Source: Anaeramoeba ignava BMAN (Eukaryota; Protista; Anaeramoebae). Taken from it: a DNA stretch of 64,000 nt. Position numbers and translations under genes: made by a program. The stretch lies in contig JAPDFW010000111.1 in NCBI GenBank assembly GCA_028826165.1, forward strand, positions 62,001-126,000. The letters are read 5' to 3'. Position 1 is the first letter of the stretch. The number at the start of each line of letters is the position of its first letter. The notes under the pieces are model-generated. The model did no database searches. It was not told the DNA's origin and saw only the letters and a list, made by a program, of their open reading frames with translations. Below, piece by piece: positions 3,741-60,340 of the stretch.

Positions 3741-9916
<6,176 letters not shown>

Positions 9917-18133: not shown

Positions 18134-18239
18134 ATTAACATCAAATTAAAAGAAAAAAAAAACAATCAAAATGAATTCAATTTTTTCTTTTTTATTCTTC
18201 TTTTCTTTTTTAGATTGAATCTTTTTAAAATGAATTCAA
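18134..18239 (+). repeat. Direct repeat copy 2 (3' end of the ankyrin-BTB gene)
   Basis: Matches 14567-14648 apart from an internal length difference. Confidence 0.85.
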
Positions 18240-21200
18240 AAAGTGAAAATATCATCATCAAAAATTTTGAATAATGAATTTTTTTCTTCAAAAACTTCTT
18301 CTTCTTTATAAAAATTATCGAAATAATCTTTTCTGATAAATTGTTCATCTTTTTTAATAAATAAAGCTTTTTCTCTATCATAAAAATTCAAATAATAACC
18401 CAAAGAAGTGCTAGTGTTTAATTGATAATAATCATGAGCATCACTCAATTCCATAACTAAAGTGCTAGTAGAAAATTGTTCAATTTCATCAAAATAAAGA
18501 AAACGGACAAATTGGCGAATAGTTTCTGGTTGTTTTCCACTATAATCTTGGACTTGATTCGATTCATCTTTAACAGCCATAAACATTCCTCTAAACAAAT
18601 CACTTCGAATTCCAAGAAGATCTTTATGAACCTTGATTTCTTCTTCTTGGCAAATAATGGTGAAATTTTTGGATTCTTCATCTTCAAAAATTTTTGCCAA
18701 ATCAGAAATAAGTCCTTGTCTTCCAATTTTTCTATTAAAATCAAACCATCCAATTTCTTGTGCAATTTGTTGAATGATTAAACGATCTTCTTCTTTTTCA
18801 ATTATTCCTGAATAAACAAATCCAAGAAATATTTTTGCTTCTTCGATTGTTTTGTCTCGAATTTTAAGAAGAACTTTTTGGACAGAATCTTTTCCAAATC
18901 GTAATTTGAGAATAAAAGAATGGAGTTGAATATTTCCTCCAATTACATGTAAATCAATATCAGTAAATTCTTTTCTTTCAAAATAATTTTTAAAGTCTTC
19001 AGATAAACTATTATATGTTTTGAGCAATTCATTTAAATTTGGATCAAAATTCCTTATTGGATCATGAATTGGATCCTTTTTTTTATTTATAATAAATTTA
19101 TTATTAATTTATAAATTCCATTTTGTTTTGTTTTTTAAATTGAACAAAAAAAATTTATTAACTTGTGCTAATTTTTCATTAAATCCTGTATTTAATAAAA
19201 TTCTAAGTGATTCCCATGCATTTTTTTGAAATAAAACTGTAAGAAGTGAAACCTTTTTCAATATAAAATTACAATTAATTAAAAATTAAAAATTACAAAT
19301 TACATTAAATATTAAATTAAATACTCCCTATTTTTTCAAATCAACAAATTAATTAATTTCTTTTTAAATATTTTATTTATTAATTAAATTGTTTTTTTTT
19401 TTACATCCTAAAATAATTTTTAATTTAAAAATCATAAATTTTTTTTTAATTAACTAAAAATACTTTCACAAAATTACAATTTGCTCCATTAAGAATTAAT
19501 TCTCGAATAATTTCAGGTGGAGAATTAATTGAGCAAGCAAAAAATAAAACCTAAATTTAAAAATTAAGGAAAAAAGTTGATTTTTTTAATAATATATAAT
19601 TACATCCTTAAAAATTAAAAATTAAAAATTAAAATTAAAATTCATTTTAAAATTAAAAATTAAAAAAATTACATTTAAAGATGAAATATTTGCTCCTTCG
19701 GAAATTAAAGTACGAATTAATTCAGGATTTTTAGAATATTCACAAGCAATATATAATGGTGTAAAATTCTATAAATAATTCAATTCAATTCAATTAAATT
19801 CAATTAAATTCAATTAAAAAATAAAAATTTACTTTTGACTAAATTTATAAAAAAATTTATAAAAAAATTTATTAAAAAATTTGTTTTTGTTTTTGTTGTT
19901 TTTGTTATTTCTACATTTTTTAGATTAATATCATATCCAGATTCGACTAATACTTCTATATATTTTGGTGAACTATCATATCCACAAACAATATGAATAG
20001 GAGAATCTCCCTTTTATATTTATATTTATATTTATATTTATTTATTTAAATATTTAAATTTATAAATTAAAAAAAGATTTTTACAATCTATTTTTTATAT
20101 CAAAAATTTTTTTTAGAATAAATCATCTTATTTTTTATATAAGAAAAAACAAATTTTTACAGTCTTTCAAATTCAAATTTTAAATTCAAATTTTAAATTT
20201 TAATTTTAATTTTAAATTCAAATTTTAATTTTAAACTAACATTAATAACAAGATTTGATGAATGATTTAAAATGAGTTTAATTTTTTCTTCATTCTCTTT
20301 CCTCATACATAAAAAATGAAGAGGTGCATTTCGCTAAAAAAATAGAAATAAAATTAATTATTTATATTTTTTTGAAAAAAAAGGAATTATTACATTCTAT
20401 TTTAAAAATTAATTTTCTATAAAATGAAAGAGAAAAAAAAATAATCAAAATATTATTTACAATATCCTAGTTAATAAATTAATTAATAAATTAATAAATA
20501 AAAATATTTCCTTTTTTTTTTTCGGAAATAAATTATTTATAAATTGTTTTACTCCAATTTCACTCATTTCTTTATTAAAAGAAAGTAGAATTTGTAACAC
20601 TCTAATATCTGTTTTTCCTTGTAAACAAGCTAAATGTATTGGTAAAATATTCTTTTCAAAAGAAAAAAAATTTAAAATAATTTTGTTTAGAAATTCTAAT
20701 AAAGAAAAATAATTATTTAATTTTACTTTCTTTTGTATTTTTAAAATATTTTTTTTTGGTGTTAGAATTTTTTAAATCAAAAAAAACATCAATATCAATA
20801 CATTCTATTTTATTTTTGGAAAATTATTTATTTATAATTTAATTTTTAATTTTTAAATTTAAATTTACATCAAAATTCATAGGATTTTCTCCATATTTAA
20901 TTAATTCATTAATAATTTCTGGATTTTGTTTAGAGTAACAAGCATAATGCAAAGGTGTTCTATCTTTATTATTCTAAAAAAAAAATAAAATAAATCAATT
21001 TATTATCAAATAAATTATTCCATTTTTATACTCTTTGATTTTTTAATGGATTAAATTTTAAAAGTTCTTTCAATGAATCCAATCTAATTCCATATTTCAT
21101 AGCTAAATGTAATGGGGTTTCATTCTAAATTAATCATAAATAACTATTTAAAAAAAATTTATTGTTTTAAATTTTAAAATTTTACTTCCTTCATTTTCAA

Positions 21201-24200
21201 TAAAAATATTAAATAATAATAATAATAACAATAAAATAAATTTAATTATTTCTTCTTACATTCTTTTTATTTTAAATATTTTTATTTTAAATATTTTTCT
21301 TTTTCTTTTCAAAATATAATTACATTTTTTGAATCTACTGGAATATAATTTGCAATTTTTGATATTGAACTTGGATTTGGATTACTTTTACAAACTAAAT
21401 GAAGACATGTTTCTGAATTCTTTTTTTTTGTTAAAGAAAAAAAAATAATTTAATTTAATTTAATTTAAAATGAGTAAATTCCGAAAATTCATTCCAAAAA
21501 AAAAAAATTTTTTTTTACTAATAAATCTTTAATTTTTGCTCCTTGTGAAATTAGAAATTCTAATATATCAGAATTTGTTTGATTTAAACATAATAAATGA
21601 AGTGGTGTTTGATTCTAAAATTGAAAAAATTTAAAATCAATTTTGTTTTCTAAATGGAAGTAATTTTTTTATTACATTCTTTTTTATCAATTAAAATAAT
21701 TATAATTCCAAAAAAAAAAATAATCAATAATTTTAATTTTATTTACAATCTAAATCCAAAAATATTTTTGTTTTAAAATTTTTATTTGAAAAATTAATTT
21801 CAAAAATCTCGTTTTACATTTTTAATATGAACTCTTGCTCCTTGTTTTATAAGTCTTTCAAAATATTCTTTTGGAAATGAATTCCAACTCAAATAATGTA
21901 ATGGTGTATTTCCCTATTAATTTAAAAAAGAAAAGAAATGATTTTAATTTTAATTTTAATTTCAATTTTAATTTTAAATAATTTACATTCTAATATTTCT
22001 CTTTTAAATGAATATTATTCTAACAAAAATTATTTAATAATCAATTTTACTTTCTATTAAAAGGAAAAAAAGTTATTTTGAATTTATTTTTATAAAAGGA
22101 AAATTTATTTACATCTATTGGAGATGGTTTTGCTCCTTTTGATAATAATAAATTGATACTTTCTAATCCAATTTTTTGATTTTGACATGCAAAATGAAGA
22201 GGAGTAAGTCCCTAAAAAAAAAACAATATAATTTCAAACTTAAAAATTTATTTTCTCATTTTTTATTTTTTACATTCTAAATTTTTTTTTTTAAAAATAA
22301 CTTTCAATTCTCAAAAATTAAAAATATAAATTTATATACAATCTATTTTATAAAATTTTTTTTTTAAAATTTAATCTTTTCAAAAATATAAAATTATAAA
22401 ATTATACAGTTTCACAATTTGGATCAGAAGAAAAATTTAATAAAGTATTAAGAATTTTAGTTTGTGAATGTTTTAAGCAAGCAATATGAAGAGGTCCAAA
22501 TTTCTAATATTTTTTAATTTTATATTTAATTTAATTTAATTTAATTTAATTTAATTTTTTGAATAAATAGAAATAATCCTCACTTTCTAAAAAAAAAACA
22601 ACAACCAAAAAATTTTTAAAATTAAAAATAAATAGAGAATAGATTATAGAATAATTTACTTTCTTTATTATTTTTTGATACAAATTAAAATTATTAAAAT
22701 GAAATTGTTTTTGTTTTTGAATTCAAATACAGTTGTAATTCTATAATTTGCTCCTTTTTGAAAAAATAATTCAATAACATCTTCAGGATAATCATTATAA
22801 ATTGCATAATGAAAAGGAGTTTCATTCTTAATTTAGAAATAAAGATTAATTAAAAATAAGAAATGAATCAAAATCTTAAAATTTATTTTACACTCTTTTT
22901 TTTTGATTATCAAAATAAAACATTTTTGTTTAAAATATTGTTTAAATAATGAATACAAACTATAGTTTATTTTTAAATTATTTTAAAAATGTATATAAAT
23001 ATAAAATAAACAATTTTAAATGAAATAATAATTTTGATACATTCGTAGCATTAGGATTTGCATTATTATTTAACAGGAATTTAATAGTTTCTGGTAATAA
23101 TTTTTTCAAACAAGCATAATGTAATGGAGAAAAACCCTAAATTAATTTTTTTCACCAAAAATAATTGATTATTAAATTCTCTAAAAAACAAAGGGAAAAT
23201 TATTTATTTCTTTTTTTATTTCAATTACATTCTTTATAAAAGAAAATATTCAAATTAAAATTGTGAATTTTCTTCTACAAAAGATGAATATAAATATAAA
23301 TCTTACGTTCTAAATAATAAATATCATAATAAATATCAAAATGAAGAAATGATAAAATTTACATCAAAATCATTAATTTTAGCACCTAAAGAAATTAATT
23401 TTTTAATAATTTCAAGATTATCAATATTATTGGATTCACAAATGAAATGTAAAGGTCTTTTTCCCTATTATAATATTTGAATATATTTAATAAAAAGGAT
23501 AAAAATGAGAAATTATTTACTTTCTATATTTATTTTTTCCCAATTAAATATTAATTAAAAAAAGTGTTTTGTTTTGTTTTGTTTTTATTGAAATAATTTT
23601 GTACAATATTAATATTTGGATTTGCACCGAAATCTAATAAATTAATTGCATTTGATTGATCCCATAATTTTTCATTAACGTTTTGAATCAAAAGAGAAAA
23701 TAATCCATTTTTCTATAAATATAAATATAAATATAAATTAATTGAAAATAAAAACAGAAATATTTTACATTCTTTTTAATTAAAAAATATTTAATAAATT
23801 TCTTAATAATTCTTAAAAAAAAATAAGAAAAAAAATAACACAATTACTCCCTGAAAATTAATATAAAATAATAATGATAATAATAAAAATAAAAATAAAA
23901 AATTCTTTCTTTTCAAATTACAAATTGTCGATCTAATTCAAATTTAGAAAGTAATAAAAAAGTAGTTTTTGGATCATTTTTTTCAAGAATATAATAAAGT
24001 GGTGTATGATTCTAAAATCAAAATAAAATAAGTATTATTCAAAATTAAAAAAAAAAAGACAAAATTTACAAACTATAAATTATCATTTTTTTTAAAATTA
24101 ATAAATATTAAATTTCTTTCTAATTATTTTTAAAGAGAAAAAATTAAATCAACTTTCTATTTAAATTTAATTTTTCCAAAAGAAAAACAAAGACAATTAT

Positions 24201-27200
24201 TAATAAACTATCCTTTTTCTTTTTAAAACAAAAATAAGAATAATAAATTTACATTTTTCAGATTAACATCAGATTCTTTTTCTAATAACAATTTTATTAA
24301 TTCAAATTCTGGATAAAATTTGCATGCATAATGTAACGGTGTCCATTTCTAATAAAATTATAATTTAAAATTTGTTTATTTTTTTTTTATTTCTCTTTCA
24401 AAAAAAAAATGAAAATGAAAATGAATCAAAAATACTTTCTAAAATTATCAAAAACAAACAAATTTCAATATATATAAATCATTAGTTAAATAAAAGTTTA
24501 TTTTACATTCTATATATAAATCCAAAAAGAATATAAAATTAAATAAAATTTTTATCAATTAATGAAACTTATTACATCAATTTCATTAATTGAAGATCCT
24601 GATTCTAAAAGAAATTTAATAGATTCTAAATTTAATTTCTTCCAACAAGCAATATGAAGAGGTGTATGTCCCTTTATTAAATTTAAATTTTTAAATATAT
24701 AAATATATAAATTTAATTTTATGAATTTTGATGTTACATCCTTTTTTGTTTTTTTTTTGTTTAAATTTTAGTAAATTAAAAAACAAAAGAAATAAATTCA
24801 AAAATTAAAAATTTTACTTTCTAAAAAAAAAGAAAATTTATATTTAATAATTAAAATAAAAATTAAAATTAAAATATTCTTCTTTTAAATTAATTTATAA
24901 TTAATTTACATTTTTTGAATTAATTTTTGATCCATTTTGAATAAGTAATTTCAAAATTGAAAGCTCTGTTTTATTTTTTGCTGCTATATGTAATAATGAA
25001 TTTTTCTAAAAATATAAACAAAACAAATTTTTTGTTTTTCAAAATTATTATTCTAAATTTATAAATAAAAAATTTTTACAGTCTTCATTTAAAAAAGAAA
25101 AGAAAAGAAAAAATTGGAGTTTAAATGATAATTATTTTTAATAAAGATGAACAAAAATACTTTCTAAATATAGAATAAATATTTTCCTTTTTTTTTTTTT
25201 CAAAAATAAAACATAAATAAAATACATTTAATATATTAAGATCTGCTCCATTTTGAATCAAACATTTAATAACATCAAAACTACATTTTTTTTTAATTGC
25301 AATAAAGATTGGTGTTTCTCCCTAAAATATTTTCAATATATTAATTAATATCAAAAAAAAAGCAAAAAAATAAAATGATTGAAAATATTGTTTTATTCTT
25401 ACAAACTATTTTTTAAAGAAAATGAATTAATTTTATTTCTAAAAGGAAAAAGTGGAACAACAAATTTACTTTCTAAAAAGAAAAAATAATTAATAAAAAA
25501 TTTTTGTTTTGATAAATGAAAATATTTACATCAATCAAATTAATTGTTTCTTTATCAATTAGAACACTTATTTCCAGAAAACTTAAACGAAAAGAAACTG
25601 CAATATGAAGAGGAACTTGATTCTATAAAAATTAATTATAAAATTCAATAATCAACATTTATAACATTTTATCTTTCATTTTTAATATTTACATCCTTTA
25701 AAATAATAGCATCAATGGAAAATATGAATAATAAATATTTTTTTTTTTATTCTTTAATAAATTTAATTTTGAATTACTTTCTATATTTTTTTTTTGAATA
25801 AAATGTAAAAATATTTGAAATATTAAATTTTAAATACATTTAAAGAATGAATATCAGCTCCTTTGTTTATTAAAAGATTAATGATTTGTGATGAAGATCT
25901 TTTTTTACAAGCTAAATGAAGCGGAGTGTTTAACTTTTTTTCAAAAATAAATTATAAATTTTCTACTTCAAAAAAAATATTAATTTGATTCAAATTACTT
26001 TCTATAAATAAACAAATAAATTAATAATTTTTCATATTAAATGAAAAAAGAAAATGTTAAATACATTCTAAATTAAAAATTAAAAATTAAAAATTAAAAA
26101 TAAATTAAAAATTAAAAATAAATTAAAAATTAAAAATTAAATTAAAAAAGCAACATTTTGTTCATTAATTTTAGCACCAGCTTCAATAATCTTCTCAATG
26201 AAAATATAATCATTTTTATGTTCACAAGCAATATGTAAAGGAGTATCTCCCTTTAAAATACAAATATTGGGAATTAATACAAGAAAATTTATTTTATTTT
26301 CTTTTTTACATCCTTTTTGAAAAATGATTAAAATTAAACTTAAGCAATTTTAAATTTCTAAAATTACTTTCTAAAAAAAGGTTTATTTTATTTTGTTTTT
26401 TTGAGGGAAATTTTCAATTTAATAATAAAATAATAATAAAAATATAAATTTCATTTTTAATTTACATTTTTCAAATTAACATCTGCTTTTTCTGAAAGTA
26501 GAAGATCTAAAACTGAAATTGGAACCCAATTTTTACAAATTAAATGTAAAGGAGTATCTTTCTATAACATAAAAATAAAAATCAATCCAAATGTTTAAAG
26601 ATAATAATTTTAATCTTTCTTTCTTTCTTTCTTAAATAAAAATTTAAAAATTTACTTCCTAAATTTTTGGATTTTTGATAAATTTTGAATTAAAAAAAAT
26701 TGATAATAATTATTTACGTTCTAAATTATATATTTTTTTTAATAAATTTTAAATAAATTTTAAATATTTTCATTTACATTCGTTGTATTAACAAGAGCAC
26801 CTGCATTAATTAAAAGTTGAATAACTTCAAAATCTTGTTGAAATGAACAAGCAATATGAAGAGGAGTAAAATTCTTTTAAAAGAAAAAAAAGGTAAAATA
26901 AAATTATTTTTATCAAGAAAATTATTTACATTCTTTATATTAATTTTAATATTAATATTAATTTTAATTTTAATTTTAATTTTAATTTTAATATTAATTT
27001 TAATATTAATTTTAATTTTAATTTTAATTTTAATATTAATTTTAATTTTAATTTTAATATTAATTTTAATTTTAATTTTAATTTTAATATTAATTTTAAT
27101 TTTAATTTTAATTTTTTACAAACTTTTTTTTATTTTTAAATTTAAATAAATAAAATAGATAAATTAAAAAATTAAATTTACATCCTTTTTTAAAACAAAA

Positions 27201-27431
27201 ATAATAAGAAATTTAAATTGAAATTGTTTAAAAAAAAATAAATATTACAATCTAAAAAAAAAAAAGAAAAAAAACCAAAATTTATTTTTATTTTAATTTT
27301 TATTTTTATTTTTATTTTTTTGAAATTATTATTTTTTGAATTACAAAATGTTGATGAGCATTTTCTCCTTGTTGAATTAATTTAGTAATTGTTTCAAAAT
27401 CTCCATTCATAAGTGATTGAAAAAAAGACAT
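18236..27431 (-). CDS. Ankyrin-repeat (~27 repeats) plus tandem BTB protein, about 78 exons including about 49 microexons of 3-6 nt
   Basis: ATG at 27431 (exon 27345-27431, MSFFQSLMNGDFETITKLIQQGENAHQHF). About 27 repeat exons, mostly 96 nt (e.g. 26778-26873 NFTPLHIACSFQQDFEVIQLLINAGALVNTTN; 26466-26561; 26155-26250), separated by AG-NNN-GT exons. Last exon 18236-19075 encodes two BTB-like domains (FTDIDLH...LHSFILKLR; KNFTIIC...KVHKDLLGIRSDLFRGMF). All introns are phase 0. Confidence 0.9.
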
Positions 27432-27500
27432 TATTGTTTTTTAAAAAAAAAAAAGGAAATTGAAAAATAAAAAAATGAAAAAAAAATTTTGCCATTTCTT

Positions 27501-29817: not shown

Positions 29818-31119
29818 TTTAATTTATTTATAAAATTATTTATAAAATTATTTATAAAATTATTAATAAAATTATTTATAAAATTATTAATAAAATTATT
29901 TATAAAATTATTTATAAAATTATTTATTTAAAATTATTTATAAAATTATTTATAAAATTATTTATAAATTATTTATTAAATTATTTATAAAATTATTTAT
30001 TAAAATTATTTATAAAATTATTTATAAAATTATTTATAAAATTATTTATAAAATTATTTATTAAATTATTTATTAAATTATTTATTAATAAAATTATTTA
30101 GATTTAAATGAATTAAAATTACAAAGTTAAAGGATTATTTTAAAAAATTAAAAATTATTTGTTGAATCTTGATTATAAAAATTATTTATTAAATTATTAA
30201 TAATTATCAATATATAAAATTATTTATTAAATTATTTTCAATATCAATATTAAAATTCATTTATCAATTTATAAATATTTATTAAATTATCATTATCATT
30301 TATTTCATTATTATTCATTAATAAATTTTTCATTTTCATGAATTAAAATTTTAAAGGATTATTTTATCATTTGTTCATTATCATTTATCATTATCAATTA
30401 TCATTATCATTATCATTTATCATTATCATTATTATCATTATCATTTTATCATTATCATTATCATTTTCATTATCATTATCATTATCATTATCATTATCAT
30501 TATCATTATCATTATCATTATCATTATCATTATCATTATCATTATCATTATCATTATCATTATCATTATCAATATCATTATCATTATCATTATCATTATC
30601 ATTATCATTATCATTATCATTATCATTTTCATTATCAATATCATTATCATTATCAATAATATTTGAAAAATTTTTAATATTATTCTCTATTAATTCTAAT
30701 TTGATAGATTTTAAAAAGAAAAGAAAAGAAAAGAAAAAAAAATTTATAATTAAATTAAATAAGGAACGTTAAATTTTAAATTGTTTTTTTTTTTTAATTT
30801 TGTTATTTTTTAATTTTAATAGATAAAATAATTAAATTAATAAATAAATATTATTAAATTTTCTTATTATTTTTTTTTAAAAAAAGAAATAAAAAAAAGT
30901 TGTTTTTTACTTTCATTTTTTAAAGTTTCTTTATCATTTAAATTTGTATTTAAGTTATCATTTGAGTTTTTTAAAGGAATTAAAACATTTTCTTTTATTG
31001 GATTTGTCATTTAAAAAAAAAAATAAGAAAAAAAAAATAATAAAAAATAAAAATGAGAAAAATAAAAAAATAAAAAATTAAATTTAAATTTTTTTTTCAT
31101 TTTTTTCATTTTTAAAATT

Positions 31120-32537: not shown

Positions 32538-32640
32538 TTTCGTTTTTTTTTTCAAAATTTTTTTTTTTCAATTTTTAAAAAGTAAAAATTCGTTAAAAAA
32601 ATTTATTTCATTTTTTTTTTCAATTTCTTTTAAAAATAAA

Positions 32641-35226: not shown

Positions 35227-35291
35227 ATTAAAAATTTTTTTTTTTCTTTTTTTTTTTTCATTTTTTTTTTAATTTAATTTTTTTTAATTTA

Positions 35292-38200: not shown

Positions 38201-40767
38201 ATGCCTATTTTCATCAAACCTATTCAAACTATCAAACGAAAATAAGAAATGGTACAGTTCACTTGAAGAAACAAATTGGATCAATCATTTAAAAACTATC
38301 ATTTCATCATCAATACAAATTGGAAATTACTTGAACAACAACACATCAGTATTGATTCAATCAGCAAACGGAAGAGATCGGAGTGTTACAAGCGATACTC
38401 CAATATTATGTCGTTTAGAAGGAGACTCAAATGTGTTTATACGGCGAATAGAAGAACTTTATAATAATCAAAATGAATGGGTTTTAAATTCAAGAATAAA
38501 AAATAAGGAAACTTGTTTTCCTTTGAATAATTTGGAAGTTTGGACAGAAGATGGATTTGTCAAAGTTTATCAAATCGTTCGCCATAAAACTTGCGAGGAA
38601 ATTGTAAGAGTCGTGACAGACTCAGGTTCTGTTGATGTGACAAAAGGTCATAGTTTGTTGGATTTAAATGGAAATTGTGTTAAAATTGATAATGTTGATT
38701 TGGGTCATCCAATTCTTCACCATAAATTCTCTTCTTATCACCAAAAAAATACCAATTCTTCCCTCAAAATATCAGATAATTTAAACGCGCTTTTTGTGAA
38801 TAACCAAATTGCTTGGAGTTTTGGTTTTTTTGCTGCTTTTTCTCAGTGCGAATCTGGAAATAATTGGAAAATTACTCATTTTGATCACAATTTAATATTA
38901 AAATTCAAAAGTATTTTCGAGAATATTTTCATCAATTTAAAGGATAAAAACCAAAATATCAAGATGTCAAAAAATAGCAATCAAAGCATTTTTAAAATCA
39001 CTTTCAACATCGAAAATATCAATAATCGAAAATATGAATTATCATTAAATAACCCATTTTCTTCAAATCAAAAAACACTTTCAGAGCAATTCAATAAGTT
39101 TTTATGCAATCAATTTTTCCATTTTTCAGGAGAAAGAAAAATTCCTGATTTTGTTTTGAATTGGAATTCTCAATTTCAAAAGTCATTTTTTGATGGATTA
39201 GTTGGAAATAATTTATCAAAACCCAAAAAATTACAAAATCAAAAAATCAAGATTAACTCAAAAAGCAAATTATATATTTCAGGAATATATCTTCTTGTTG
39301 AAGAAATTGGGGAAATGAATATAAAAATAGAATTCAATGAAAAAAGTGAAGAATTTGAAATTGAAGTTTCAAAGAAAAAGGAAACAGAAAGAAATCAAAA
39401 GAAACCAAATCTATCAAGTTGCGTGAAACAAAAAATAAAAATAGGAGTTTCAAATCAATATGTATATGATTTGTCAACAAGAAACGAGCATTTTCAAGCA
39501 GGAATAGGAAATATTATTGTTCACAATACAGCACAATTATCATCATTAACACAATTACTTGAGGATCATTTTTATCGAACAATTCGAGGATTTGAAATTT
39601 TAATTGAAAAAGAATGGATTAGTTTTGGGCATGATTTTGGAATTTTTCGAAATTTTTCCAAAAAGAAAAATAATGAAAAACCAAGTTATTCTATTTTTAT
39701 TCAATGGATTGATTGTGTTTATCAAGTTCTTCATCAATTCCCAAATGCTTTTGAATTTAATGAAGATTTACTGATTAATATTCTTGAAAATCTTTTTAGT
39801 CTTAAATTTGGAACATTTATTTTTCCTTTTGAAAAAGATCGAAAGGAAAATAATATTCATTTAAATACTTATTCACTTTGGACTTCTATTAATGAGAATT
39901 TGGATTTATTTGTTAATCCTATGTATCAACCTGTTAAAGAACCTCTTAGACCAAGTGTTTTTACTCGACATATTGCATTTTGGGAAAGGTAGATAAATTA
40001 AATTAAAATTCATTTATAAAATTAAAATTAAAATTAAAATTAAAATTAAAATTAAAATTAAAATTAAAATTAAAATTCATTTATAAAATTAATTTTTAGA
40101 TATTATATGAAAAGTTTATTTTCTCAAAAAATTCAAGAAGAAACAAAAACAATTCAAAGAATTCTTCAAGAATGTTCAAAATTATCTCAAGAAATGAGTT
40201 TATTTGAAAAAGAAAATATTAAAGCATTAGAATATCAAAATAGATTATTGAAAGAATTAGAAGAATTAAAAAAACAACAAAATGATGAAACTCCTTTAAA
40301 TTTTTCAAGTTCAGATGAAGATGATGAAAAAGAAAAAGAAAAAGAAAAAGAAAATGAAAATAATAAAGAAAATGAAAAAGAAAAAGATAAAAGAAAGTGA
40401 TAATGAAAATGATAATGAAAAATGAAAATGAAAAATGATAAAAGAAAATGATAAATAAAAAATGATAAAGAAAATGAAAATGAAAATGAAAAAGAAAAAG
40501 AAAAAGATAAAGAAAAAGAAAAAGAAAATGAAAATGAAAATGAAAATGAAAATGATAAAGAAAATGATAAAGAAAAAGATAAAGAAAATGATAAAGAAAA
40601 TGATAATGAAAATGATAAAGAAGATGATAAAGAAAAAGATAATGAAAATGATAAAGAAGATGATAAAGAAGATGAAAAAGAAAAAAAAGATAAATAATTT
40701 TGTTCGTTTTAAAATTATCTTTTCAAGATTTTTTTTAAAACAAATTCTAATTTCATTTTTAAGTTAA
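35292..40767 (+). CDS. Myotubularin-related (GRAM + PTP-like) protein with an intein, probably a pseudophosphatase
   Basis: GVLRLTNYRL (GRAM), DGWQIYNPIEEFKRF, WRISQYNDEYKLSETYP, SRFLNRIPVLVW, FYRTIRGFEILIEKEWISFGH, FIQWIDCVYQVLHQFPNAFEFNE and a C-terminal coiled coil. The 3' end is uncertain. Confidence 0.92.
38382..39527 (+). mobile_element. Intein 3 (382 aa) in the myotubularin P-loop
   Basis: GRDR|SVTSDTPILCR...VDVTKGHSL...YVYDLSTRNEHFQAGIGNIIVHN|TAQLSSL: Ser1, block B, His-Asn end and +1 Thr. Confidence 0.95.
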
Positions 40768-47363: not shown

Positions 47364-47528
47364 TTTTAATAAAATTGTTTTTTTAAAAGAAAAAATGAAA
47401 AATGAAAAAAATAAAAAGAAAAATAAAAATAAAAAGTGGAATGTTTTTTATTTCAAAAATAAGAAATGATTTAATTTATTTAAATATTAAAAATTTTATT
47501 TTAAAATTTTATTATTAAAAATTAAAAA

Positions 47529-49870: not shown

Positions 49871-49962
49871 TTTTAAAAAAGCAAAAAAAAAATGAAAAAA
49901 AAAAAAGCAAAAAAAAATAATTTTTTTAATTTCATTTTTTTCCTTTTTATTTTTTAAAGAAA

Positions 49963-52869
49963 ATGAATGATTCAGAAACTAATTTAACAAAGTTTATTCA
50001 AGTTTCAAAAATTTTACAAAATCTTTCACAAAAATCTTTAACTAGAATTAGATCAAAATTCAAACAAATAAGAAAAATTCTTTCTGAACCAATTAATTTA
50101 TATAAAATTTATCAAAATTCATTTGATTTAAATCCTCTTATTGATTTACTTCAAAATTTAAAAGATTCTGATTTGAAAGATGAAAAAATTCATTTTACTT
50201 TAAATCGTTTTTTACTTGAATCTGATTTGAATATTTCTTTTTATTATTTAATTCATATTTTAGCTTCTTCACCAAATACAATTGAAATTGAAAATGAAAA
50301 TGAAAATGAAAATGAAAATGAAAATGAAAATGAAAATGAAAATGAAAACGAAAATCAAAACGAAAATGAAAATCAAAATGAAAATGAAAATCAAAATCAA
50401 AATCAAAATGAAAATCAAAATCAAAATCAAAATCAAAATCAAAATCAAAATCAAAATCAAAATGAAATTGAAAATAATGAAAATTTAAATCAAATTGAAA
50501 ATGAAAATAAAATTCCAAATAAAATTCCAAATAAAAATCCAATTGAAAATTCAAAATTATATAAAATCGAAATCAAATTTCAAAATGAAAATCAAAATCA
50601 AATTGAAAATGAAATTGAAAATGAAAATGAAAATCAAAATGAAATCGAAATCAAATTTCAAAATGAAAATCAAAATGAAATTGAAAATGAAATTGAAAAT
50701 CAAAATCAAATTTCAAAATGAAAATCAAAATCAAATTGAAAATGAAATTGAAAATGAAATTGAAAATGAAATTGAAAATGAAATTGAAAATCAAAATCAA
50801 ATTGAAAATCAAAATCAAAATAAAAATCAAAATCAAATTAAAAATCAAAATGAAAATTTAAATCAAAATAAAATCGAAAATAAAATTGAAAATCAAATTG
50901 AAAATCAAAATCAAAATCAAAATCAAAATCAAAATCAAAATCAAAATCAAAATCAAATTGAAAATCAAAATAAAATTGAAAATCAAAATCAAAATCAAAA
51001 TCAAAATCAAATCAAATTGAAAATCAAATTGAAAATCAAATTGAAAATCAAAATGAAAATCAAAATGAAAATCAAATTGAAAATCAAAATAAAAATCAAA
51101 ATGAAAATCAAAATAAAATTGAAAATCAAATTGAAAATCAAAATAAAATTGAAAATCAAAATAAAATTGAAAATCAAAATCAAAATCAAAATCAAAATAA
51201 AATTGAAAATCAAAATCAAAATCAAAATAAAATTGAAAATCAAAATCAAAATCAAAATCAAAATCAAATTGAAAATCAAAATAAAATTGAAAATCAAAAT
51301 AAAATTGAAAATCAAAATCAAAATCAAAATCAAAATCAAATTGAAAATCAAAATCAAAATAAAATTGAAAATCAAAATAAAATTGAAAATCAAAATCAAA
51401 ATCAAAATAAAATTGAAAATGAAAATAAAATTCCAAATGAAATTGAAATTCAAAATAAAATTCAAAATCAAAATCAAATTGAAATTAAAAATAAAGTGGA
51501 AAATGAATTTGAATTCGAAATTGAAAATGAAATTTATTCCTCAAAAAAAATCCATTTAACAAAAGTTCTTTGGTTTTTAGAACAAAATTCTGAAGTTGAA
51601 AAAGATATCCAATTAGTTTCTCAAATAATAGGAATTAGATTTGTTTTGATCAAAGATTTCAAACATTCACCAGAAGAAATTTTCAGAAAATATTTCAAAA
51701 ATAGTTATTCTGGAATGATTAGAGTGATAATTTCATCACCAAAATTTTATGAATTAATACTATCAATTCAACACAGTTCCAAAAAAGTTTCATTTCCAAC
51801 TTTGATATTTGATCCAGAAGATGGATTCAAATCAAAATACACACATTTTTTTGATAATCTCAAAAATATTTGGAAAACAAATAATTTTGTTACTTTGAAA
51901 AAATATTGTTCATTCAAAAAAATTATTCACAAGAAAAATTACAATTTTTTCATTGAAAAATTAAACTTAATAATTCAACGCGTTCATGATAAGGAAAAGA
52001 GGAAAATAATACCAAAAACAAAAATTAGAGATAAATTAAGGGATATTTCTAAGCTCAATTTTAACAGAGTTTCTTTAAATACTTCAACAAAACCACAAAA
52101 TTTGAAAAATGTTGATTTAGTTTATTCAAATGAAGAAAAAGAAATCAAAATTGAAGACGATTTTCAGAAACAAACGAAAAAACTATCAATAAATTATGAA
52201 AGCTTTTTGTTTCTTTTCACAGAACTTCTAGATATGCTTAAAAGTATTTCTCAAGAATTAAATCAAGAAAATCCAAATATCAAGCAAATTGAAAAGATTG
52301 TTAACATGATAATCCAAAATTCACTTCATTATTCAACAACAACATCACTTGAATCATTCTGTAATTTGACTCATCAAATCACAATAAATAAGCCTCAAAT
52401 ATTCTGGATTGATTTACCGCATCAAGACAACAAGAATATTTCTGAATATTTGCAAAAATACGGAATCAAAACTTATTTTCCTCCAACAAAAATGGAAAAA
52501 ATAGACAACAAAAATATGGAAGTTGTTGATATCCAAACTGCAAAAGCTGATGTTCTTGCCTGGTTTTGTGATCATGATGTGCAAATTTTTGATAATCCAA
52601 CTTTTTTTATTGATAAATATCAATCTTTTAACAAAAAGTGTCAAAATTATCAACTCAATGAATTCTCACTTAGATTTGTTTCAAATAGTCATACTTGCTA
52701 TCCAATGCTTTCCTTTTTGAGGAGAATTCTTTTTTCTAATGCTCCTTTCTTGATTTATTGCAGTAAAAATTCGGCTAATTCACAAAGAGTTCAATCTTGT
52801 TTATCTTCTTTTTCAAATGTTTGGATTACTTGGCACTTACAAATTGCTAGAAAATTTATGTTGATGTGA
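49963..52869 (+). CDS. Hypothetical protein with a long N/Q/E tract (frameshifts inside the tract)
   Basis: ORFs 49963-50721 and 51496-52869 flank a low-complexity tract. No domain recognised. Confidence 0.55.
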
Positions 52870-52975
52870 TTTCGTTCCTCTTTTTTTCCTTTCAAAAAAA
52901 CAAAAATCCAAAAAATTAAAAAAAAAAACTCAAAAAAACTTTTTTTCATTTTTTTCATTTTTTTTTCTTTTTAAA

Positions 52976-54892
52976 ATGTCAAATGAAAATAAAAATCAAA
53001 ATTTAAATCAAAATCAAAATCAAAATTTAAATCAAAATCAAAATTTAAATGAAAATAAAAATCAAAATGAAAATGAAAATCAAAATCAAAATCAAAATGA
53101 AAATCAAAATGAAAATCAAAATGAAAATCAAAATTTAAATGAAAATCAAAATGAAAATTTAAATGAAAATGAAAATGAAAATGAAAATCAAAATCAAAAT
53201 CAAAATCAAAATCAAAATCAAAATCAAAATCAAAATCAAAATCAAAATCAAATTCAAAATCAAAATCAAAATCAAAATCAAAATCAAAATGAAAATGAAA
53301 ATCAAAATCTAAATCAAAATTTAAATGAAAATCATAATGAAAATTTAAATGAAAATCAAAATCAAAATCAAAATCAAAATCAAATTCAAATTCAAAATCA
53401 AAATCAAAATCAAATTCAAAATCAAAATAATTCATTAGAATTACAAGAAAAATTAAAAGAATTACAACAAAATTATCTTAATATTCAAAAGGAAAATCAA
53501 AAACTTAAAGAAAACTCTCCAACTCATAAATTAGAATTAAAAATTAAAAATTTGGAAAACTATTTGCAACAAATCGAACAAGAAAAAACAAGAATTGAAA
53601 CAGAAAAAACTTCACAACAAAATAAAATTATGGAATTTGAAGAAAAAATTGGTCAAATTGGAATTCAACTTGCACAAAAAAATCAAGAAGTCGATGATTT
53701 GGAAAAAAAATTAAATCACTTTAAAATTCTTCTTAAAAAAGCTAATGATCATATCCAAGAATTGAAAAAAAAAAACGAATCAAAAAATTCTGAATCAAAT
53801 TCATTGAATCAAAATTATCAAGAATTGAAAAAGAAAAATGAGGATTTGGAAGCCAAACTAGAAACATTTACAAAATCAAAAACAGAAGAAAAGGAAGAAA
53901 TTATAAAATATCAAGATGAATTGAATCAACAAAAAGAATTAGTCAATCAACTTCAATTCAAAACGCAAAATTTTGAAGAAGAAATCAAAAAAAAGGATTT
54001 AATGATCCAAAATTTAGAATCAATCAACAAAAAACAAGAAGAAGATTTTACAGCTTATAAATCACGTGCTCAAATTGCTCTTGCTCAAAAAATGGAAGAA
54101 AATAGCCAAGCAAACAAGCCCAATCCAGAAATGGAATATTTCAAACAAGAAATCCAAGAATTGAATCAAAAAATCAAAAAAATTCAAACACTTAATGAAA
54201 AACTCCAGAAAAAACTTCAGAAAAAACAAATCCAATTCGAATCAAATATCCCTCAAATTTCTTCCACAGAAAACAAGGAATATGAAAAGAAAATTAAGCA
54301 AATCGAAACTCAATGGTCTCAAAAATACGACCAATTAAGTCAAGAAAGAGAAAATTTAACAAAACTTCATTTAAAAAAAAACCAAGAAATGAATTTCAAA
54401 CACAAAAAAATTCTCGATGAAATGACTAAGCAAATCCAAGAATTGCAACAAGAAAAATTCTCAATTTCACAAAACCATGAAAATCAAAAATCACAAAATG
54501 AAATGACTATTCAAAATTTAAACAATGAAATCCAATCTCTTAAAAAACAAAACCAAGAACTACTTTCAGAATCTCAATTAAAATTCTCAAAACAAATTTT
54601 TCAAAATCAAAATGAAAATCAAAATGAAAAAAATAAAACAATTTTAATTCAAAAACCTAAAGAATCTCCAAACCAAACTTTAATTAATTCAGGAAATCAA
54701 TCCAAAACTAAAGAAATTAAATTTGATCCAACTCAATTTAATTATTTGAAAAACATTATTATGCAATATATGATGGATAATGAACAGCATGAAAAACTAA
54801 TTCCTGTAATTGCTGCTCTTTTGAAATTAACCAAGAAAGATCTTCAAAAAATTGAAGATGCAAGATCTAAAAAAGGATGGGGATTTTGGTGA
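52976..54892 (+). CDS. GRIP-domain golgin
   Basis: Long coiled coil ending NYLKNIIMQYM...LIPVIAALLKLTKKD...KKGWGFW. Confidence 0.85.
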   Translation: MSNENKNQNLNQNQNQNLNQNQNLNENKNQNENENQNQNQNENQNENQNENQNLNENQNENLNENENENENQNQNQNQNQNQNQNQNQNQNQIQNQNQNQNQNQNENENQNLNQNLNENHNENLNENQNQNQNQNQIQIQNQNQNQIQNQNNSLELQEKLKELQQNYLNIQKENQKLKENSPTHKLELKIKNLENYLQQIEQEKTRIETEKTSQQNKIMEFEEKIGQIGIQLAQKNQEVDDLEKKLNHFKILLKKANDHIQELKKKNESKNSESNSLNQNYQELKKKNEDLEAKLETFTKSKTEEKEEIIKYQDELNQQKELVNQLQFKTQNFEEEIKKKDLMIQNLESINKKQEEDFTAYKSRAQIALAQKMEENSQANKPNPEMEYFKQEIQELNQKIKKIQTLNEKLQKKLQKKQIQFESNIPQISSTENKEYEKKIKQIETQWSQKYDQLSQERENLTKLHLKKNQEMNFKHKKILDEMTKQIQELQQEKFSISQNHENQKSQNEMTIQNLNNEIQSLKKQNQELLSESQLKFSKQIFQNQNENQNEKNKTILIQKPKESPNQTLINSGNQSKTKEIKFDPTQFNYLKNIIMQYMMDNEQHEKLIPVIAALLKLTKKDLQKIEDARSKKGWGFW

Positions 54893-54964
54893 TTAATTTT
54901 TAAAGAAAACATTTTAATTTTAATTTTTTCCCATTTAAAAAACAATAAAAATTTTTCAAAGCAT

Positions 54965-55950
54965 TTCAAAAATAAGAATAGATTTAAATTTAATATTTAA
55001 TTTATAAATTAATTTAAAAATATAATTTCTAAATGAATTTTATTATTAAAATAATAATTTTATGTTTTAGATTTAAATATTTTATTATTTAAATATTTAA
55101 CATAAAAATATAAAAAATAAGAATAGATTTAATTTAATATTTAATTTATAAAATAATTTAAAAATATAATTTAATATTTAAATCTATGTTTAAAATAATA
55201 ATTTATTGTTTTAGATTTAAATATTTTATTATTTAAATATTTAACATATAAATATAAAAATGAAAATTGATTTAATTTAATATTTAATTTATTAATTAAT
55301 TTAAAAATATAATTTAATATTTAATTTTATTATTAAAATAATAATTTAATGTTTTAGATTTAAATATTTTATTATTTAAATATTTAACATAAAAATATAA
55401 AAATGAAAATAGATTTAATTTAATATTTAATTTATAAAATTAATTTAAAAATATAATTTAATATTTAATTTTATTATTAAAATAATAATTTATTGTTTTA
55501 AATTTAAATATTTTATTATTTAAATATTTAACATAAAAATATAAAAATGAAAATAGATTTAATTTAATATTTAATTTATAAATTAATTTAAAAATATAAT
55601 TTAATATTTAATTTTATTATTAAAATAATATTTTAATGTTTTAGATTTAAATATTTTATTATTTAAATATTTAGCATATAAATATAAAAAATAAGAATAG
55701 ATTTAATTTAATATTTAATTTATAAATTAATTTAAAAATATAATTTATTTAATTTTATTATTAAAATAATAATTTATTGTTTTAAATTTAAATATTTTAT
55801 TATTTAAATATTTAACATAAAAAATATAAAAATAGATTTAATTTAATACTTAATTTATAAATTAATTTAAAAATATAATTTAATATTTAATTTTATTATT
55901 AAAATAATAATTTATTGTTTTTATATTTAAATATTTTATTATTTAAAAAT
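54965..55950. repeat. Tandem array of about 7 copies of a ~143-bp unit
   Basis: The unit aatagatttaatttaatatttaatttata...gttttagatttaaatattttattatttaaatatttaacata recurs at ~143-bp intervals. Confidence 0.85.
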
Positions 55951-56339
55951 ATTTTGAAAATTGATTTTTGAAATTAAAATTTTATCTTTTTGAATTAAAT
56001 TGAATTAATATTAATTTGGAAATTTGTTTTAAAATTTAAATTTATTAATAATTTTTAAATTCCAAAAAAAAAAATTAAATTAAAAATTAAATTAAAATAA
56101 TTTTCCTTTTTTTTTAATAAAAAAAATTAATAAAAAATAATAATAATTTATTAATAAATTAATTTAAAATAATAAATTAAAAAGAAAATTAAATTAATTA
56201 TTAATTTAAATTTTTCTTTATTTTAAATTTTTATTTATTTTCAAAATTCATTTTTATTCATTTTTATTTAAATTTTTCATTTTTCCTTTTTAAAAAACAA
56301 AAACAAAAACAAAAACAAAAACAAAAACACAAAAACAAA

Positions 56340-59300
56340 ATGGATAATGATAATAATAATAACCAAATTGAAAATGCAAATCAAAATCAAAATGAAAATG
56401 AAATGAAAAATTTAGAAAAAAAAGTAACAAAAAATTTAATTAAAAATTATTCAAACCTTTTAAATGGAAATTCATTTAAAGATTTTTCAATTTTTGTTGA
56501 GAATAAATCAAATCCTTTTGAAATTAAAGTTCATAAATCAATTTTATCTTCAAGATCTCCTTTTTTTAATGAGTTTTTAAGGCAAGAATCTCTTTTTATT
56601 TCTTTAAATCAATTTAATAAAAAAGAAATGGAATCAATTTTGAGTTATATTTATTATGGAAATATTTCTTTTGAGAATCAAGAAAATCTTTTTCAATTAT
56701 TAGAAATTTCAATTTATTTTAAATTAAATTTATTGAAAAGAAATTATTCAAAAATTTTAAATTCAATTAATTATTCAAATTTTTCCAATTTTTATTCCAA
56801 AATCGAAATTTAAATTCAAATGAAATTGAAATAAAATGTTTTGAATTAATAAATCAAAATTTTTCCCAAATTCAGAATAATGAGAATTTATTCAATTTAA
56901 CTAAAGAAGAAATTATCAAATTTATTCAATTTAAACAAGAAAAAAAAGAAATTTTTCAATTTGATTTTTTTCAATTTTTAAATAATTGGATTAAAAAAAG
57001 AGTTAATTCATTAAGATTAAGGAAATTTAAGAACAAAATGAATGCAAAGAAAAGATTATTTCATTCTTTTTTTTCATTATTTGATAAAGATTCAATTTCA
57101 AAACAAGATTTTGATAAATTAAAACAATTTGAAATTTTTCTTCCAAATTCTTTTTTAATTCATTTTGAAAGAACTATTTTTCAAATTCAAGATCAAGAAA
57201 ATCAAACAAAAATCAAAGAAAAAGAAAAGGAGAATCAACAGATGAAAATTGAAATTGAAGAGAAATTGAAGAAAGAAAAAAAAGAAATTGAAGAGAAATT
57301 GAACAAAGAAATTGAAGATAAAAACAAGGAAATTGAAAACAAAGATGAAGAAAATCAAAATCTTAAATCTGAAAATGAAAAGAAAGATAAGATTCTCAAA
57401 CAAAAAGATGAAGAAATCCAAAATCTTAAATTATCATTTGAAAAAGAAATTGAAAAAGAAAATCAAATTCAAATTCAAATTGAAAATCAAAATCAAATTC
57501 AAAATCAAAATCAAAATCAAAATCAAAATCAAAATCAAAATCAAAATGAAAATGAAAATCAAAATGAAAATGAAAATGAAAATGAAAATGAAAATGAAAA
57601 TGAAAATCAAAATCAAAATCAAAATCAAAATCAAAATCAAAATGAATTGTTGAAGATTTTTTCAGATTCAGAAATTATTACAGAAGAAGAATATGTTAAG
57701 AAATTACAAGAATGGATAAATGATAATGAATTCTTTTCTAAAATGAAAAAAGGATTTTCAGCAAAAAGAGATGGATTTAATTCTCAAAATTGGCATAATA
57801 AAGTTGATGGGAAAGGAAAAACATTATTTATTATCAAAACAAAAGATAACTTTATTTTTGGAGGTTTTACTCAAGTTGGATGGACAAATGATAAATCAAA
57901 ATGGAGTGTTAAAGGAGGAAGTTATGGATTTATTAATGATCCAAATGCATTTATTTTTTCATTAAGAAATGATAAAGGGGATAGAAAACCAGATAAGTTT
58001 ACAATTAAAAAAGGAAAAGAAAAATATGCAATTAAATATGATTTAAATTGTGGTCCAAGTTTTGGATGTAAAAATAAATAATTTATATTTAATAAATATT
58101 TATTATTATAATTAAAATTAAATTAATAAATAATCCAAAATATTAATATAATCAATAATATTATTATTTCAATTTAAAATAAAATTAATTTTAAATTAAA
58201 TTATTATTAATTATTATTAAAATTAATTATTTATCTTTATTAAAATAGTGAGTAAATAATTTATATTTAATAAATTATAATTAAAATTAAATTAATAAAT
58301 AACCCAAAAATATTAATATAATAAATAATATTATTATTTCAATATAAAATAAAATTAATTTTAAATTAAATTATTATTAATTATTATTAAAATTAATTAT
58401 CTTTTATTAAAATAGATCGTAAATAATTTATATTTTAATAAATATTTATTATTATAATTAAAATTAAATTAATAAATAATCCAAAATATTAATATAATAA
58501 ATAATATTGTTATTTCAATTTAAAATAAAATTAATTTTAAATTTAATTATTATTAATTATTATTAAAATTAAATATTTATCTTTATTAAAATAAATAATT
58601 TATATTTAATAAATATTTATTATTATAATTAAAATTAAATTAATAAATAATCCAAAAATATTAATATAATAAATAATATTGTTATTTCAATATAAAATAA
58701 AATTAATTTTAAATTAAATTATTATTAATTATTATTAAAATTAATTAATTATCTTTATTAAAATAGTTGGTAAATAATTTATATTTAATAAATATTTATT
58801 ATTATAATTAAAAATTAAATTAATAAATAATCCAAAAAATATTAATATAATAAATAATATTATTATTTCAATTTAAAATAAAATAAATTTTAAATTAAAT
58901 TATTATTAATTATTATTAAAATTAATTATTTATCTTTATTAAAATAGGGGAGTAAATAATTTATATTCAATAAATATTTATTATTATAATTAAAATTAAA
59001 TTAATAAATAATCCAAAAATATTTATAATCAATATTATTTCAATTTTAAAATAAAATAAATTAAAAATTATTATTAAAATTAATTATTTATCTTTATTAA
59101 AATAGTTAGTAAATAATTTATATTTAATAAATATTTATTATTATAATTAAAATTAAAAATTAAATAACCCAAAAATATTAATATAAAAACAATAATTTTA
59201 AAATAAAATAAATTTTAAATTAAATTATTATTAATTCATTAAAATTAATTATTTATCTTTATTAAAATAGATTGTAAATAATTTATATTTAATAAATATT

Positions 59301-60340
59301 TATTATTATAATTAAAATTAAATTAATAAATAATCCAAAAATATTAATATAATAAATAATATTATTATTTCAATATAAAATAAAATTAATTTTAAATTAA
59401 ATTATTATTAATTATTATTAAAATTAATTACTTATCTTTTATTAAAATAGATGGTAAATAATTTATATTTAATAAATATTTATTATTATAATTAAAATTA
59501 AATTAATAAATAATCCAAAATAATATAATAAATAATATTATTATTTAAAATTTAAAATAAAAATAAATTTTTAAAATAAATTATTATTAATTATTATTAA
59601 AATTAATTATTTTATCTTTTATTAAAATAGTTGGTAAATAATTTATATTTAATAAATAATTATTATTATAATTAAAATTAAATTAATAAATAATCTAAAA
59701 TATTAATATAATAAAATAATATTATTATTTCAATTTAAAATAAAATTAATTTTAAATTAAATTATTATTAATTATTATTAAAATTAATTATTTATCTTTA
59801 TTAAAAATAGTTCGTAAATAATTTTATATTTAATAAATATTTATTATTATAATTAAAATTAAATTAATAAATAATCTAAAATATTAATATAATAAATAAT
59901 ATTATTATTTCAATTTAAAATAAAATTAATTTTAAATTAAAATTATTATTAATTATTATTAAAATTAATTAATTATATTTTATTAAAATAGCTCGTAAAT
60001 AATTTATATTTAATAAATAATTATTATTATAATTAAAATTAAATTAATAAATAATCTAAAATATTAATATAATAAATAATATTATTATTTCAATTTAAAA
60101 TAAAATTAATTTTAAATTAAATTATTATTAATTATTATTAAAATTAATTATTTATCTTTATTAAAATATTTATAGGTGATCTTCTGTTAAATTCTAAATT
60201 ACAATCTGGTTATTCAAATTTTGGTTTTACTTATAATCTACCTAATGGAATTAAATATGGAACAAATGAAGCTCAAAAGTTATTTAGCTGGTTCTTTTAA
60301 TAAATGGATTGTTGATGAACTTGAGACTTATTTCATTTAA
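56340..60340 (+). CDS. BTB-BACK-coiled coil-TLDc protein whose TLDc domain is interrupted by a microexon array
   Basis: BTB (KDFSIFV...IKVHKSILSSRSPFF); TLDc (FSAKRDGF...HNKVDGKGKTLFIIKTKDNFIFGGFT...AFIFSL...GPSFG); donor GT at 58068; last exon 60176-60340 (DLLLNSKLQSGYSNFGFTY...YLAGSFNKWIVDELETYFI). Single-base indels near 56740-56785 and 60278. Confidence 0.88.
58068..60175 (+). repeat. Array of about 12 near-identical ~175-bp GT...AG intron units separated by variable 3-nt exons
   Basis: Junction pattern aaaatAG-NNN-GTaaataat: TGA 58249, ATC 58416, none ~58592, TTG 58767, GGGA 58948, TTA 59106, ATT 59271, ATG 59451, TTG 59631, TTC 59811, CTC 59992. Confidence 0.93.

Follow-up and report, generated by a model that had tools for sequence, protein, structure and literature searches.

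The window and its motif clusters

The stretch analyzed here (the window) is 64 kb of the genome of Anaeramoeba ignava BMAN (C112:62001-126000 in a 42.8-Mb, 147-contig assembly), and it holds two genes in which runs of candidate single-codon exons accompany a BTB domain: an ankyrin-BTB (ANK-BTB) gene on the minus strand (27431-18236) and a BTB-BACK-TLDc gene on the plus strand (56340-60340). The composition of the window and its TAA stop codons agree with a eukaryote that has the standard code and many introns, and the published genome is 80.65% A+T overall and 91.86% A+T in its introns, with 15,022 predicted proteins (PMC11550330).

The motif AG-NNN-GTAA, in which three bases stand between AG and GT, occurs 59 times in the window compared with 8.7 +/- 2.8 times across 100 dinucleotide shuffles, none of which reached 59, and 48 of the 59 lie within the two genes, at 19.3-27.3 kb on the minus strand and 58.2-60.0 kb on the plus strand. 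By this count the observation of single-codon exons is real and far above chance. Beyond the two genes there are 14 occurrences of AG-NNN-GTA[AT] in the window, and because every one of them is an ordinary exon end or lies inside coding sequence, the claim of an earlier sequence-only reading of this DNA, that runs of single-codon exons spare the housekeeping genes, holds for the window; no credible micro-exon was found in any further gene of the 64 kb. The restriction to particular gene classes is based on this window and one 1.8-Mb contig (C1), on which the micro-exon loci comprise TLDc genes, three ANK+BTB genes, two other BTB genes, and one Ras-like+ANK gene. A raw genome-wide count of paired motifs was set aside, as its value (1316 compared with 1044 in a reversed control) is uninformative and clustering alone counts. 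Pfam searches were made exon by exon or per long open reading frame (ORF), and exons were joined locally for the frame check only; in the scanned long ORFs of the ANK-BTB and TLDc genes, Pfam found BTB and no NACHT domain.

The ANK-BTB gene

The ANK-BTB gene is modeled with 75 exons, 29 large and 46 of 3 nt, with AG/GT at every border, zero internal stops, and an intact frame of 1219 residues that is obtained only when the 46 tiny exons are included. Its 74 introns are 53-187 nt long, mostly 55-95 nt. The BTB domain is encoded by the last exon (18236-19075; Pfam E 1.2e-12 to 1.6e-12, with 1.2e-12 for 18236-19027), and no BACK domain was seen by Pfam in the scanned ORFs of the gene. In the local gene model the 46 tiny exons span 19325-27251: four successive 3-nt exons stand behind exon 1 (27251, 27184, 27122, 26932), and thereafter there are usually two in each gap between 96-nt ankyrin exons, so that paired AG-NNN-GT motifs, mostly 58-85 nt apart, alternate with 96-nt phase-0 exons reading x-x-TPLH...GA..N..N. 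The triplets are mostly AAA, AAT, GAT, AAC, and GAA, with no stop triplet among the 46 and G or C as the last base in just two of them.

When nine single main exons were compared with the Pfam Ank profile (E 8e-8 to 3e-4), exon residues 1-32 matched profile positions 2-32 of 33. As the main exons cover positions 2-32, the two 3-nt exons of each repeat are predicted to supply exactly the hairpin-tip residues, Ank positions 33 and 1. We take these residues to be positions 2 and 3 in the numbering of designed ankyrin libraries (D-x-x-G-x-TPLH), where they are target-contact positions.

One 105-nt ankyrin exon (20973-20869) has no tiny exons upstream and carries the hairpin residues fused to the main exon; its residues 4-31 match Ank profile positions 2-28, with three extra residues ahead of position 2, and judging by this alignment it looks like a fusion intermediate. 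The longest introns of the gene, at 24253-24072 (180 nt), 20553-20396 (156 nt), 19915-19768 (146 nt), and 27120-26932 (187 nt), have roughly double the usual length. The first three occupy sites without a tiny exon, and the 187-nt intron lies inside the N-terminal run of four; all four are possibly relics of lost micro-exons.

The two residues per repeat also mark a difference between gene models. In an A. flamelloides ANK-BTB homologue, P0123, the period is 34 residues, and in the public A. ignava model P0122 it is 32 residues, two residues short per repeat; the genomic locus of P0122 was not pinned in a search dominated by matches to intronless ankyrin families. These intronless families are large, lie in the same genome, and have a 34-residue period in open frames of up to 2684 residues, and they coexist in A. 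ignava with the intron-rich ANK-BTB family. Beyond the window gene, at least five ankyrin loci with tiny exons lie on one contig. At the C1 loci L004, L026, L027, and L029 the paired tiny exons are kept despite differing introns, and BTB stands at the end of three of these four, while a Ras-like domain starts L029. In this last locus (C1:1606000-1613000) a Ras-family ORF precedes ankyrin exons with paired 3-nt exons. In a further locus on the same contig, L028 (C1:1793000-1800000), a BTB ORF precedes a run of six 3-nt exons (P-P-K-E-E-P) and then an ankyrin exon.

The BTB-BACK-TLDc gene and its family

In the second gene of the window, a BTB ORF (56340-56813; Pfam E 1e-13) loses its frame near 56800, and a BACK-like stretch follows in another frame (56798-57040; Pfam E 0.0018, with 18.8 bits falling below the 20.9 cut-off). 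The next exon (57038-58067) encodes a coiled-coil, N/Q/E-rich region and the N-terminal two thirds of the TLDc domain (Pfam TLD E 1.1e-16, profile positions 2-120 of 170), and it ends in phase 1 with ...GPSFG. It is followed by a tandem array of about 12 intron units (58068-60175), each about 178-181 nt and matching the others at 90-93%, and then by a last exon (60176-60340) encoding the C-terminal third of TLDc.

Between the units lie nine 3-nt exons (58249-58251, 58416-58418, 58767-58769, 59106-59108, 59271-59273, 59451-59453, 59631-59633, 59811-59813, and 59992-59994) and one 4-nt spacer (58948-58951), all different; at the array junction near 58590 the exon is lost. Read in phase 1, the array is open and consists of NNT codons when the 4-nt exon is left out and runs into a stop when it is included. 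The last exon changes frame between 60270 and 60285 relative to its paralogs, which read ...NEA.SYLAGS... in one frame where the window copy spans two. Because of the frame breaks near 56800 and at 60270-60285, together with the 4-nt spacer, the window copy compared with its paralogs is probably a pseudogene, or else a carrier of assembly errors.

The family to which this gene belongs is very large. A first look gave at least 594 candidate TLDc exons in the 43-Mb genome, mostly in BTB-BACK fusions, with a precomputed BACK domain listed for many paralogs; 152 paralogs scored at E below 1e-38, 150 of them below 1e-51, and almost all of the 152 stop at or near the same residue at the end of the TLDc exon. 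Among 40 TLDc loci sampled, this site holds an intron or an array with 0-25 tiny exons in 29, is intronless in 9, with loops of 2-8 residues, and is unclear in 2. When the 29 intron-bearing paralogs and the window copy are read with every tiny exon included, 23 of the 30 are in frame and free of stops, with up to 25 codons in the loop; L043, with 25 tiny exons, and L023, with 16, are intact examples. The loop composition is led by Asp (19%) and Tyr (13%), then Gly, Phe, Ser, and Asn. The public TLDc models splice exon 1 directly to the last exon, giving a loop of 1-2 residues.

In an AlphaFold model of the TLDc domain of a paralog (predicted local distance difference test score 93.6), the site falls between two short strands in the lowest-confidence block, and as modeled it is a flexible surface loop. 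Foldseek placed NCOA7, OXR2, TBC1D24, and mEAK7 as the best matches to this model, with template modeling scores of 0.68-0.73 and a probability of 1.00. The earlier suggestion that both genes join BTB to a second, unrelated fold and carry their 3-nt exons at loops is thus borne out, by the hairpin tip of the ankyrin repeat and by the low-confidence surface loop of TLDc; that the layout extends genome-wide agrees with the TLDc, ANK+BTB, and other BTB loci with micro-exons found elsewhere, the layout being tied to BTB in the sample.

Variation is also found outside the loop. Over 132 codons of exon 1 in 18 array-bearing paralogs (L005-L046), the proportion of synonymous differences (pS) is 0.075 and the ratio of nonsynonymous to synonymous proportions (pN/pS) is 1.4, and in this alignment the family shows marks of diversifying evolution. 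In exon 1 the variable columns group at residues 85-93 and 126-164 of the model, and the domain is thus diversifying outside the array loop too. A locus on another contig, L025 (C35:694000-698000, at 1540-3531), encodes by Pfam a U-box, TPR, and TLDc with no intron at the loop site, and TLDc is thus joined to another type of ubiquitin-ligase module as well.

The array units

The TLDc intron unit is present in at least 549 copies at 91-95% identity. Every copy among the matches listed lies in a tandem array on a contig that also holds TLDc matches, and among those matches none stands alone or in an unrelated gene; placement at the TLDc loop site is established for the arrays sampled. The consensus units of arrays on different contigs are only 1.1% apart, compared with a pS of 7.5% for exon 1, and from this closeness it would appear that units have been exchanged between loci or have expanded very recently. 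With a Dscam-like array in mind, in which docking or selector pairing of RNA would guide the choice of exactly one exon, the fold of the unit was computed and is not unusual (z 0.59). The idea that the introns host a noncoding RNA was dropped, as there is no Rfam match and no special fold of the unit.

At junctions with exact flanks, 352 spacers are 3 nt, 13 are 4 nt, 2 are 2 nt, and none is 6 nt. Three bases thus stand between AG and GT at 352 of 367 junctions, unlike the zero-length exon of recursive splicing, where a regenerated 5' splice site adjoins the 3' splice site directly. As a test for selection on frame, this census fails to discriminate between readings. The 4-nt spacers, at 58948-58951 and 12 other genomic sites, are common triplets with one homopolymer base added, and the two 2-nt spacers each read GA. 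These odd lengths stem either from slippage mutations in copies that are decaying or from homopolymer errors of the long reads. The commonest spacer form, N-T-G (37%), is that of the first three bases of the last exon, which would fit a first duplication of an intron with its following 3 nt and subsequent duplication of the unit. Neighboring spacers are identical in 17% of pairs, compared with 12% of nonadjacent pairs.

A third architecture was seen at L001 (C1:405000-414999, minus strand, about 9779-4250), where a run of about 35 single-codon exons stands behind a BTB ORF (Pfam E 1.3e-18) and a coiled coil and encodes a C-terminal tail in which R, N, Y, D, Q, and P abound; the last exon has two codons (F-K, then stop). 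The introns here are near-identical, about 73 nt long, and of another family, and one of them contains a pure (TTA)n expansion of about 1 kb (about 5920-6950). The fixed 3-nt step thus recurs in at least three unrelated array types, the ankyrin, the TLDc, and the L001 tail arrays, and because the spacers in all of them are 3 and never 6 nt, a mechanism with a fixed 3-nt step is hinted at.

Evidence for a probable translation of the spacers

The base composition of the tiny exons follows the phase in which they would be read. The last base is G or C in 3 of 112 phase-0 exons, which come from the ankyrin arrays and the C-terminal tail array of L001, compared with 125 of 258 phase-1 exons, which come from the TLDc arrays (Fisher p 3e-21), and there is no stop triplet among the 112 phase-0 exons collected. 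In the phase-1 spacers it is the middle base, codon position 3, that is fixed, being T in 220 of 258. Within TLDc arrays, pairwise divergence at spacer bases 1, 2, and 3 (codon positions 2, 3, and 1) is 0.66, 0.23, and 0.67, compared with 1-7% for the aligned intron units, so that divergence at codon positions 1 and 2 exceeds that of the surrounding introns about 20-fold; these loop positions are near saturation, a further mark of diversifying evolution. Paralogs that are 3-4% apart in exon 1 have wholly different arrays. Avoidance of T before exons that start with AA, AG, or GA was not significant (3 of 17, p 0.13).

The phase-tracked composition and the excess divergence at codon positions 1 and 2 argue that the spacers are not neutral sequence that is skipped. 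On these patterns the 3-nt exons are very probably genuine in the ankyrin genes and probably genuine in the TLDc genes.

Proposed explanation and alternatives

The anatomy of the arrays, their recurrence across the families, the phase-dependent composition, and the excess at codon positions 1 and 2 are observed, and we explain them by real codon-sized exons carried in duplicating cassettes of an intron and a codon, which would yield hypervariable loops in the germline. The probability of this explanation is, in our estimate, about 0.58. In the ANK-BTB family, a repeat would be encoded by a 96-nt exon and by two 3-nt exons for the two hairpin-tip residues, and this layout would be old, as it is kept in paralogs despite their diverged introns. 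In the TLDc family, one phase-1 intron at the surface loop would have multiplied as a cassette of about 178 nt of intron plus 3 nt, each copy adding one residue to the loop once it is included in the mRNA. Arrays would gain and lose cassettes by tandem duplication or by unequal recombination between near-identical introns, and the two bases that fix the amino acid would then diverge fast, through selection or through exchange with a common cassette pool. The outcome would be hundreds of germline paralogs with Asp/Tyr-rich loops that vary in length and sequence, borne on proteins with the architecture of CUL3 adaptors. Since the short introns are most likely removed singly, by intron definition, a 3-nt exon would need no exon definition. 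The sequence-only reading had proposed a receptor-diversification system, and the comparison of paralogs supports diversification at the germline level.

Several observations weigh against this explanation. No transcriptome-derived TLDc protein was found, though A. ignava EukProt proteins are in the database searched; the TLDc protein search returned genome-model proteins, its single EukProt match was a BTB-only protein, and no contig encoding protein P0063 was found. The join of exon 1 to the last exon in the public models is also in frame, and the TLD profile is roughly filled without extra residues, exon 1 reaching position 120 of 170 and the last exon contributing 54 residues. Spacers of 2 or 4 nt (15 of the 367 with exact flanks) are no rarer than intron indels, so no purifying selection on spacer length is visible, unless these spacers are homopolymer assembly errors or belong to pseudogene copies. 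Finally, an excess of 20-fold at two bases is more than point mutation and selection alone would readily give, and the pattern of the TLDc arrays, taken alone, may have its source in a mutational process linked to the junctions.

The diversification might instead arise in splicing, with tiny exons included or skipped in combinations so that each gene has many loop variants. Any subset of exons would keep the frame, as each is 3 nt, and with phase-1 codons nearly all of the form NNT, 16 of the 22 arrays with three or more exons are free of stops in any combination; there is moreover a precedent in the alternative splicing of Tuber melanosporum described in passages of PMC9815663 and PMC4986451. 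Against this, the other 6 of the 22 arrays could form stops upon skipping, the variation that is visible lies between germline paralogs, and the intron unit lacks a special fold that might act as a selector. We consider splicing as the main source of the diversity unlikely.

Slightly less likely, in our view, is that the introns are selfish, introner-like elements that have proliferated, with the added codons merely tolerated in permissive loops and tails and with no adaptive diversification. This would account for the copy number and identity of the unit, for a consensus that is closer across contigs than exon 1 is at synonymous sites, for 3-nt and never 6-nt spacers in at least three unrelated array types, and for the confinement of the arrays to loops, hairpin tips, and one C-terminal tail. 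It sits poorly with the finding that all copies among the matches listed are in tandem arrays and none stands alone; the small excess of identical neighboring spacers lends weak support to a duplicated 3-bp target, but such a duplication alone leaves the variety of spacers unexplained, and variable codon positions 1 and 2 beside a fixed position 3 need an extra assumption. It therefore explains the matter in part, that is, the identity of the introns and their location in loops and not the pattern over codon positions.

The TLDc arrays could also be noncoding, removed whole or stepwise with the 3-nt pieces skipped, in which case AG-NNN-GT would be a by-product of tandem duplication. The in-frame public models that omit the arrays, the nearly full TLD profile, the 4% of spacers that break the frame, and the failure to find TLDc transcripts in protein database searches all lean this way. 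A neutral spacer would, however, be expected to diverge by 1-7% as the introns do, whereas bases 1 and 3 stand at about 0.66 and the base at codon position 3 is T in 85%, and in independent array types alike the composition follows the phase of reading. With the tiny exons skipped, the loops would have 1-2 residues, fewer than the 2-8 of the intronless paralogs. Nor can it explain the ankyrin gene, whose Ank profile needs both residues, and we regard this alternative as improbable.

That the arrays are an artefact of long-read assembly in very A+T-rich repeats is scarcely credible: array copy numbers and the 4-nt spacers with an added homopolymer base could be errors, and the sole public run found, of unknown kind, holds 31% of words, but dozens of loci, spread over many contigs, share the architecture and differ in their series of spacers, and the ankyrin gene is single-copy with diverged introns.

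Comparison with known systems

The closest comparator is the expanded 'nank' family of NACHT-ANK genes in the truffle T. melanosporum, which, in the passages of PMC9815663 and PMC4986451 that describe it (citing Iotti et al. 2012), has dozens of 3-bp mini-exons that are reported to be alternatively spliced. As described there, it resembles the A. ignava case in being a paralogous family with many 3-bp exons in a recognition domain, the mini-exons lying in the C-terminal ankyrin domain and being proposed to diversify recognition. Set against that description, the A. ignava case differs in that the organism is a metamonad amoeba, in that BTB, of the CUL3-adaptor type, takes the place of the NACHT NTPase, and in that a second, unrelated fold, TLDc, uses the same device, with exons in arrays of near-identical introns and an excess of divergence at codon positions 1 and 2. 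For the truffle, alternative splicing has been reported; the A. ignava case is described here from genome sequence.

Micro-exons of animals and plants, including neural ones, likewise indicate that a 3-nt exon can be spliced and often supplies residues of a surface loop, and RPS24 has three consecutive micro-exons of 3, 18, and 22 bp (PMC12207440). They number one or a few per gene and depend on regulated recognition, whereas A. ignava would have 46 within a single gene and runs of up to 25, separated by introns of 55-180 nt. With introners the TLDc arrays share hundreds of near-identical introns that are seemingly younger than the adjoining coding sequence, but among the matches listed the A. 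ignava copies stand in tandem arrays, all of them at a single homologous site in a single gene family, and three coding bases come with each copy. The WD40, ANK, and TPR repeat arrays of fungal NOD-like receptors (NLRs), which are reshuffled by unequal crossing-over, are similar in their high unit identity, few hypervariable selected positions, and fast turnover of units (PMC9815663), and they differ in that the unit there is a whole protein repeat inside an exon and here an intron with a single codon. The TLDc domain itself has the same fold and Pfam TLD match as OXR1, NCOA7, TBC1D24, and mEAK7, but the TLDc chains matched by Foldseek come from a few conserved proteins, several of them solved in the V-ATPase-bound state, whereas A. 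ignava has at least 594 candidates with a hypervariable loop.

Full-text literature searches for serial 3-nt exons gave nothing comparable, and the Anaeramoeba genome papers, the intein paper, and the A. pumila preprint make no mention of tiny exons or of TLDc or BTB expansions. What is new here is the TLDc arrays together with the signature of selection in them. The massive intein content of A. ignava has been published (PMC10710043), and the sequence-only reading made two intein calls in the window, at 5543-8721 and 38331-39992, in V-ATPase subunit A and myotubularin. Just beyond the 3' end of the ANK-BTB gene, a 12-nt tandem repeat (17990-18075) lies at the 3' end of an ORF of 1152 residues (14639-18097) with no Pfam match.

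Significance

If RNA confirms the exons, this would be the most extreme use of codon-sized exons reported as far as we found, with dozens per gene, and it would mean that a spliceosome can remove long series of introns spaced 3 nt apart and that duplication and shuffling can act on single codons as units. Following the NACHT-ANK genes of the truffle, it would be the second case to arise independently, making one codon per exon at binding positions a recurrent route to recognition repertoires. The public A. ignava models would carry systematic errors in both families, with ankyrin repeats two residues short and TLDc loops lacking, and a very large BTB-TLDc family, about 4% of the genes, would be under diversifying selection while going unmentioned in the literature searched.

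BTB proteins with a second interaction domain commonly serve as CUL3 substrate adaptors. Both window genes resemble such adaptors. Their CUL3 binding, a role in immunity or surveillance, and a special spliceosome, as put forward by the sequence-only reading, are inferences and no more. A bolder possibility, which we entertain tentatively and with considerable doubt, is that a codon-cassette system, whose intron-plus-codon units serve in recombination and perhaps in alternative splicing as well, writes hypervariable binding loops into hundreds of BTB (CUL3-type) adaptors on two unrelated folds, forming a ubiquitin-based innate recognition repertoire that would be convergent with the mini-exons of the truffle NLRs. 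Such a repertoire would serve a protist that hosts symbionts, giant-virus-derived inteins, and much foreign DNA.

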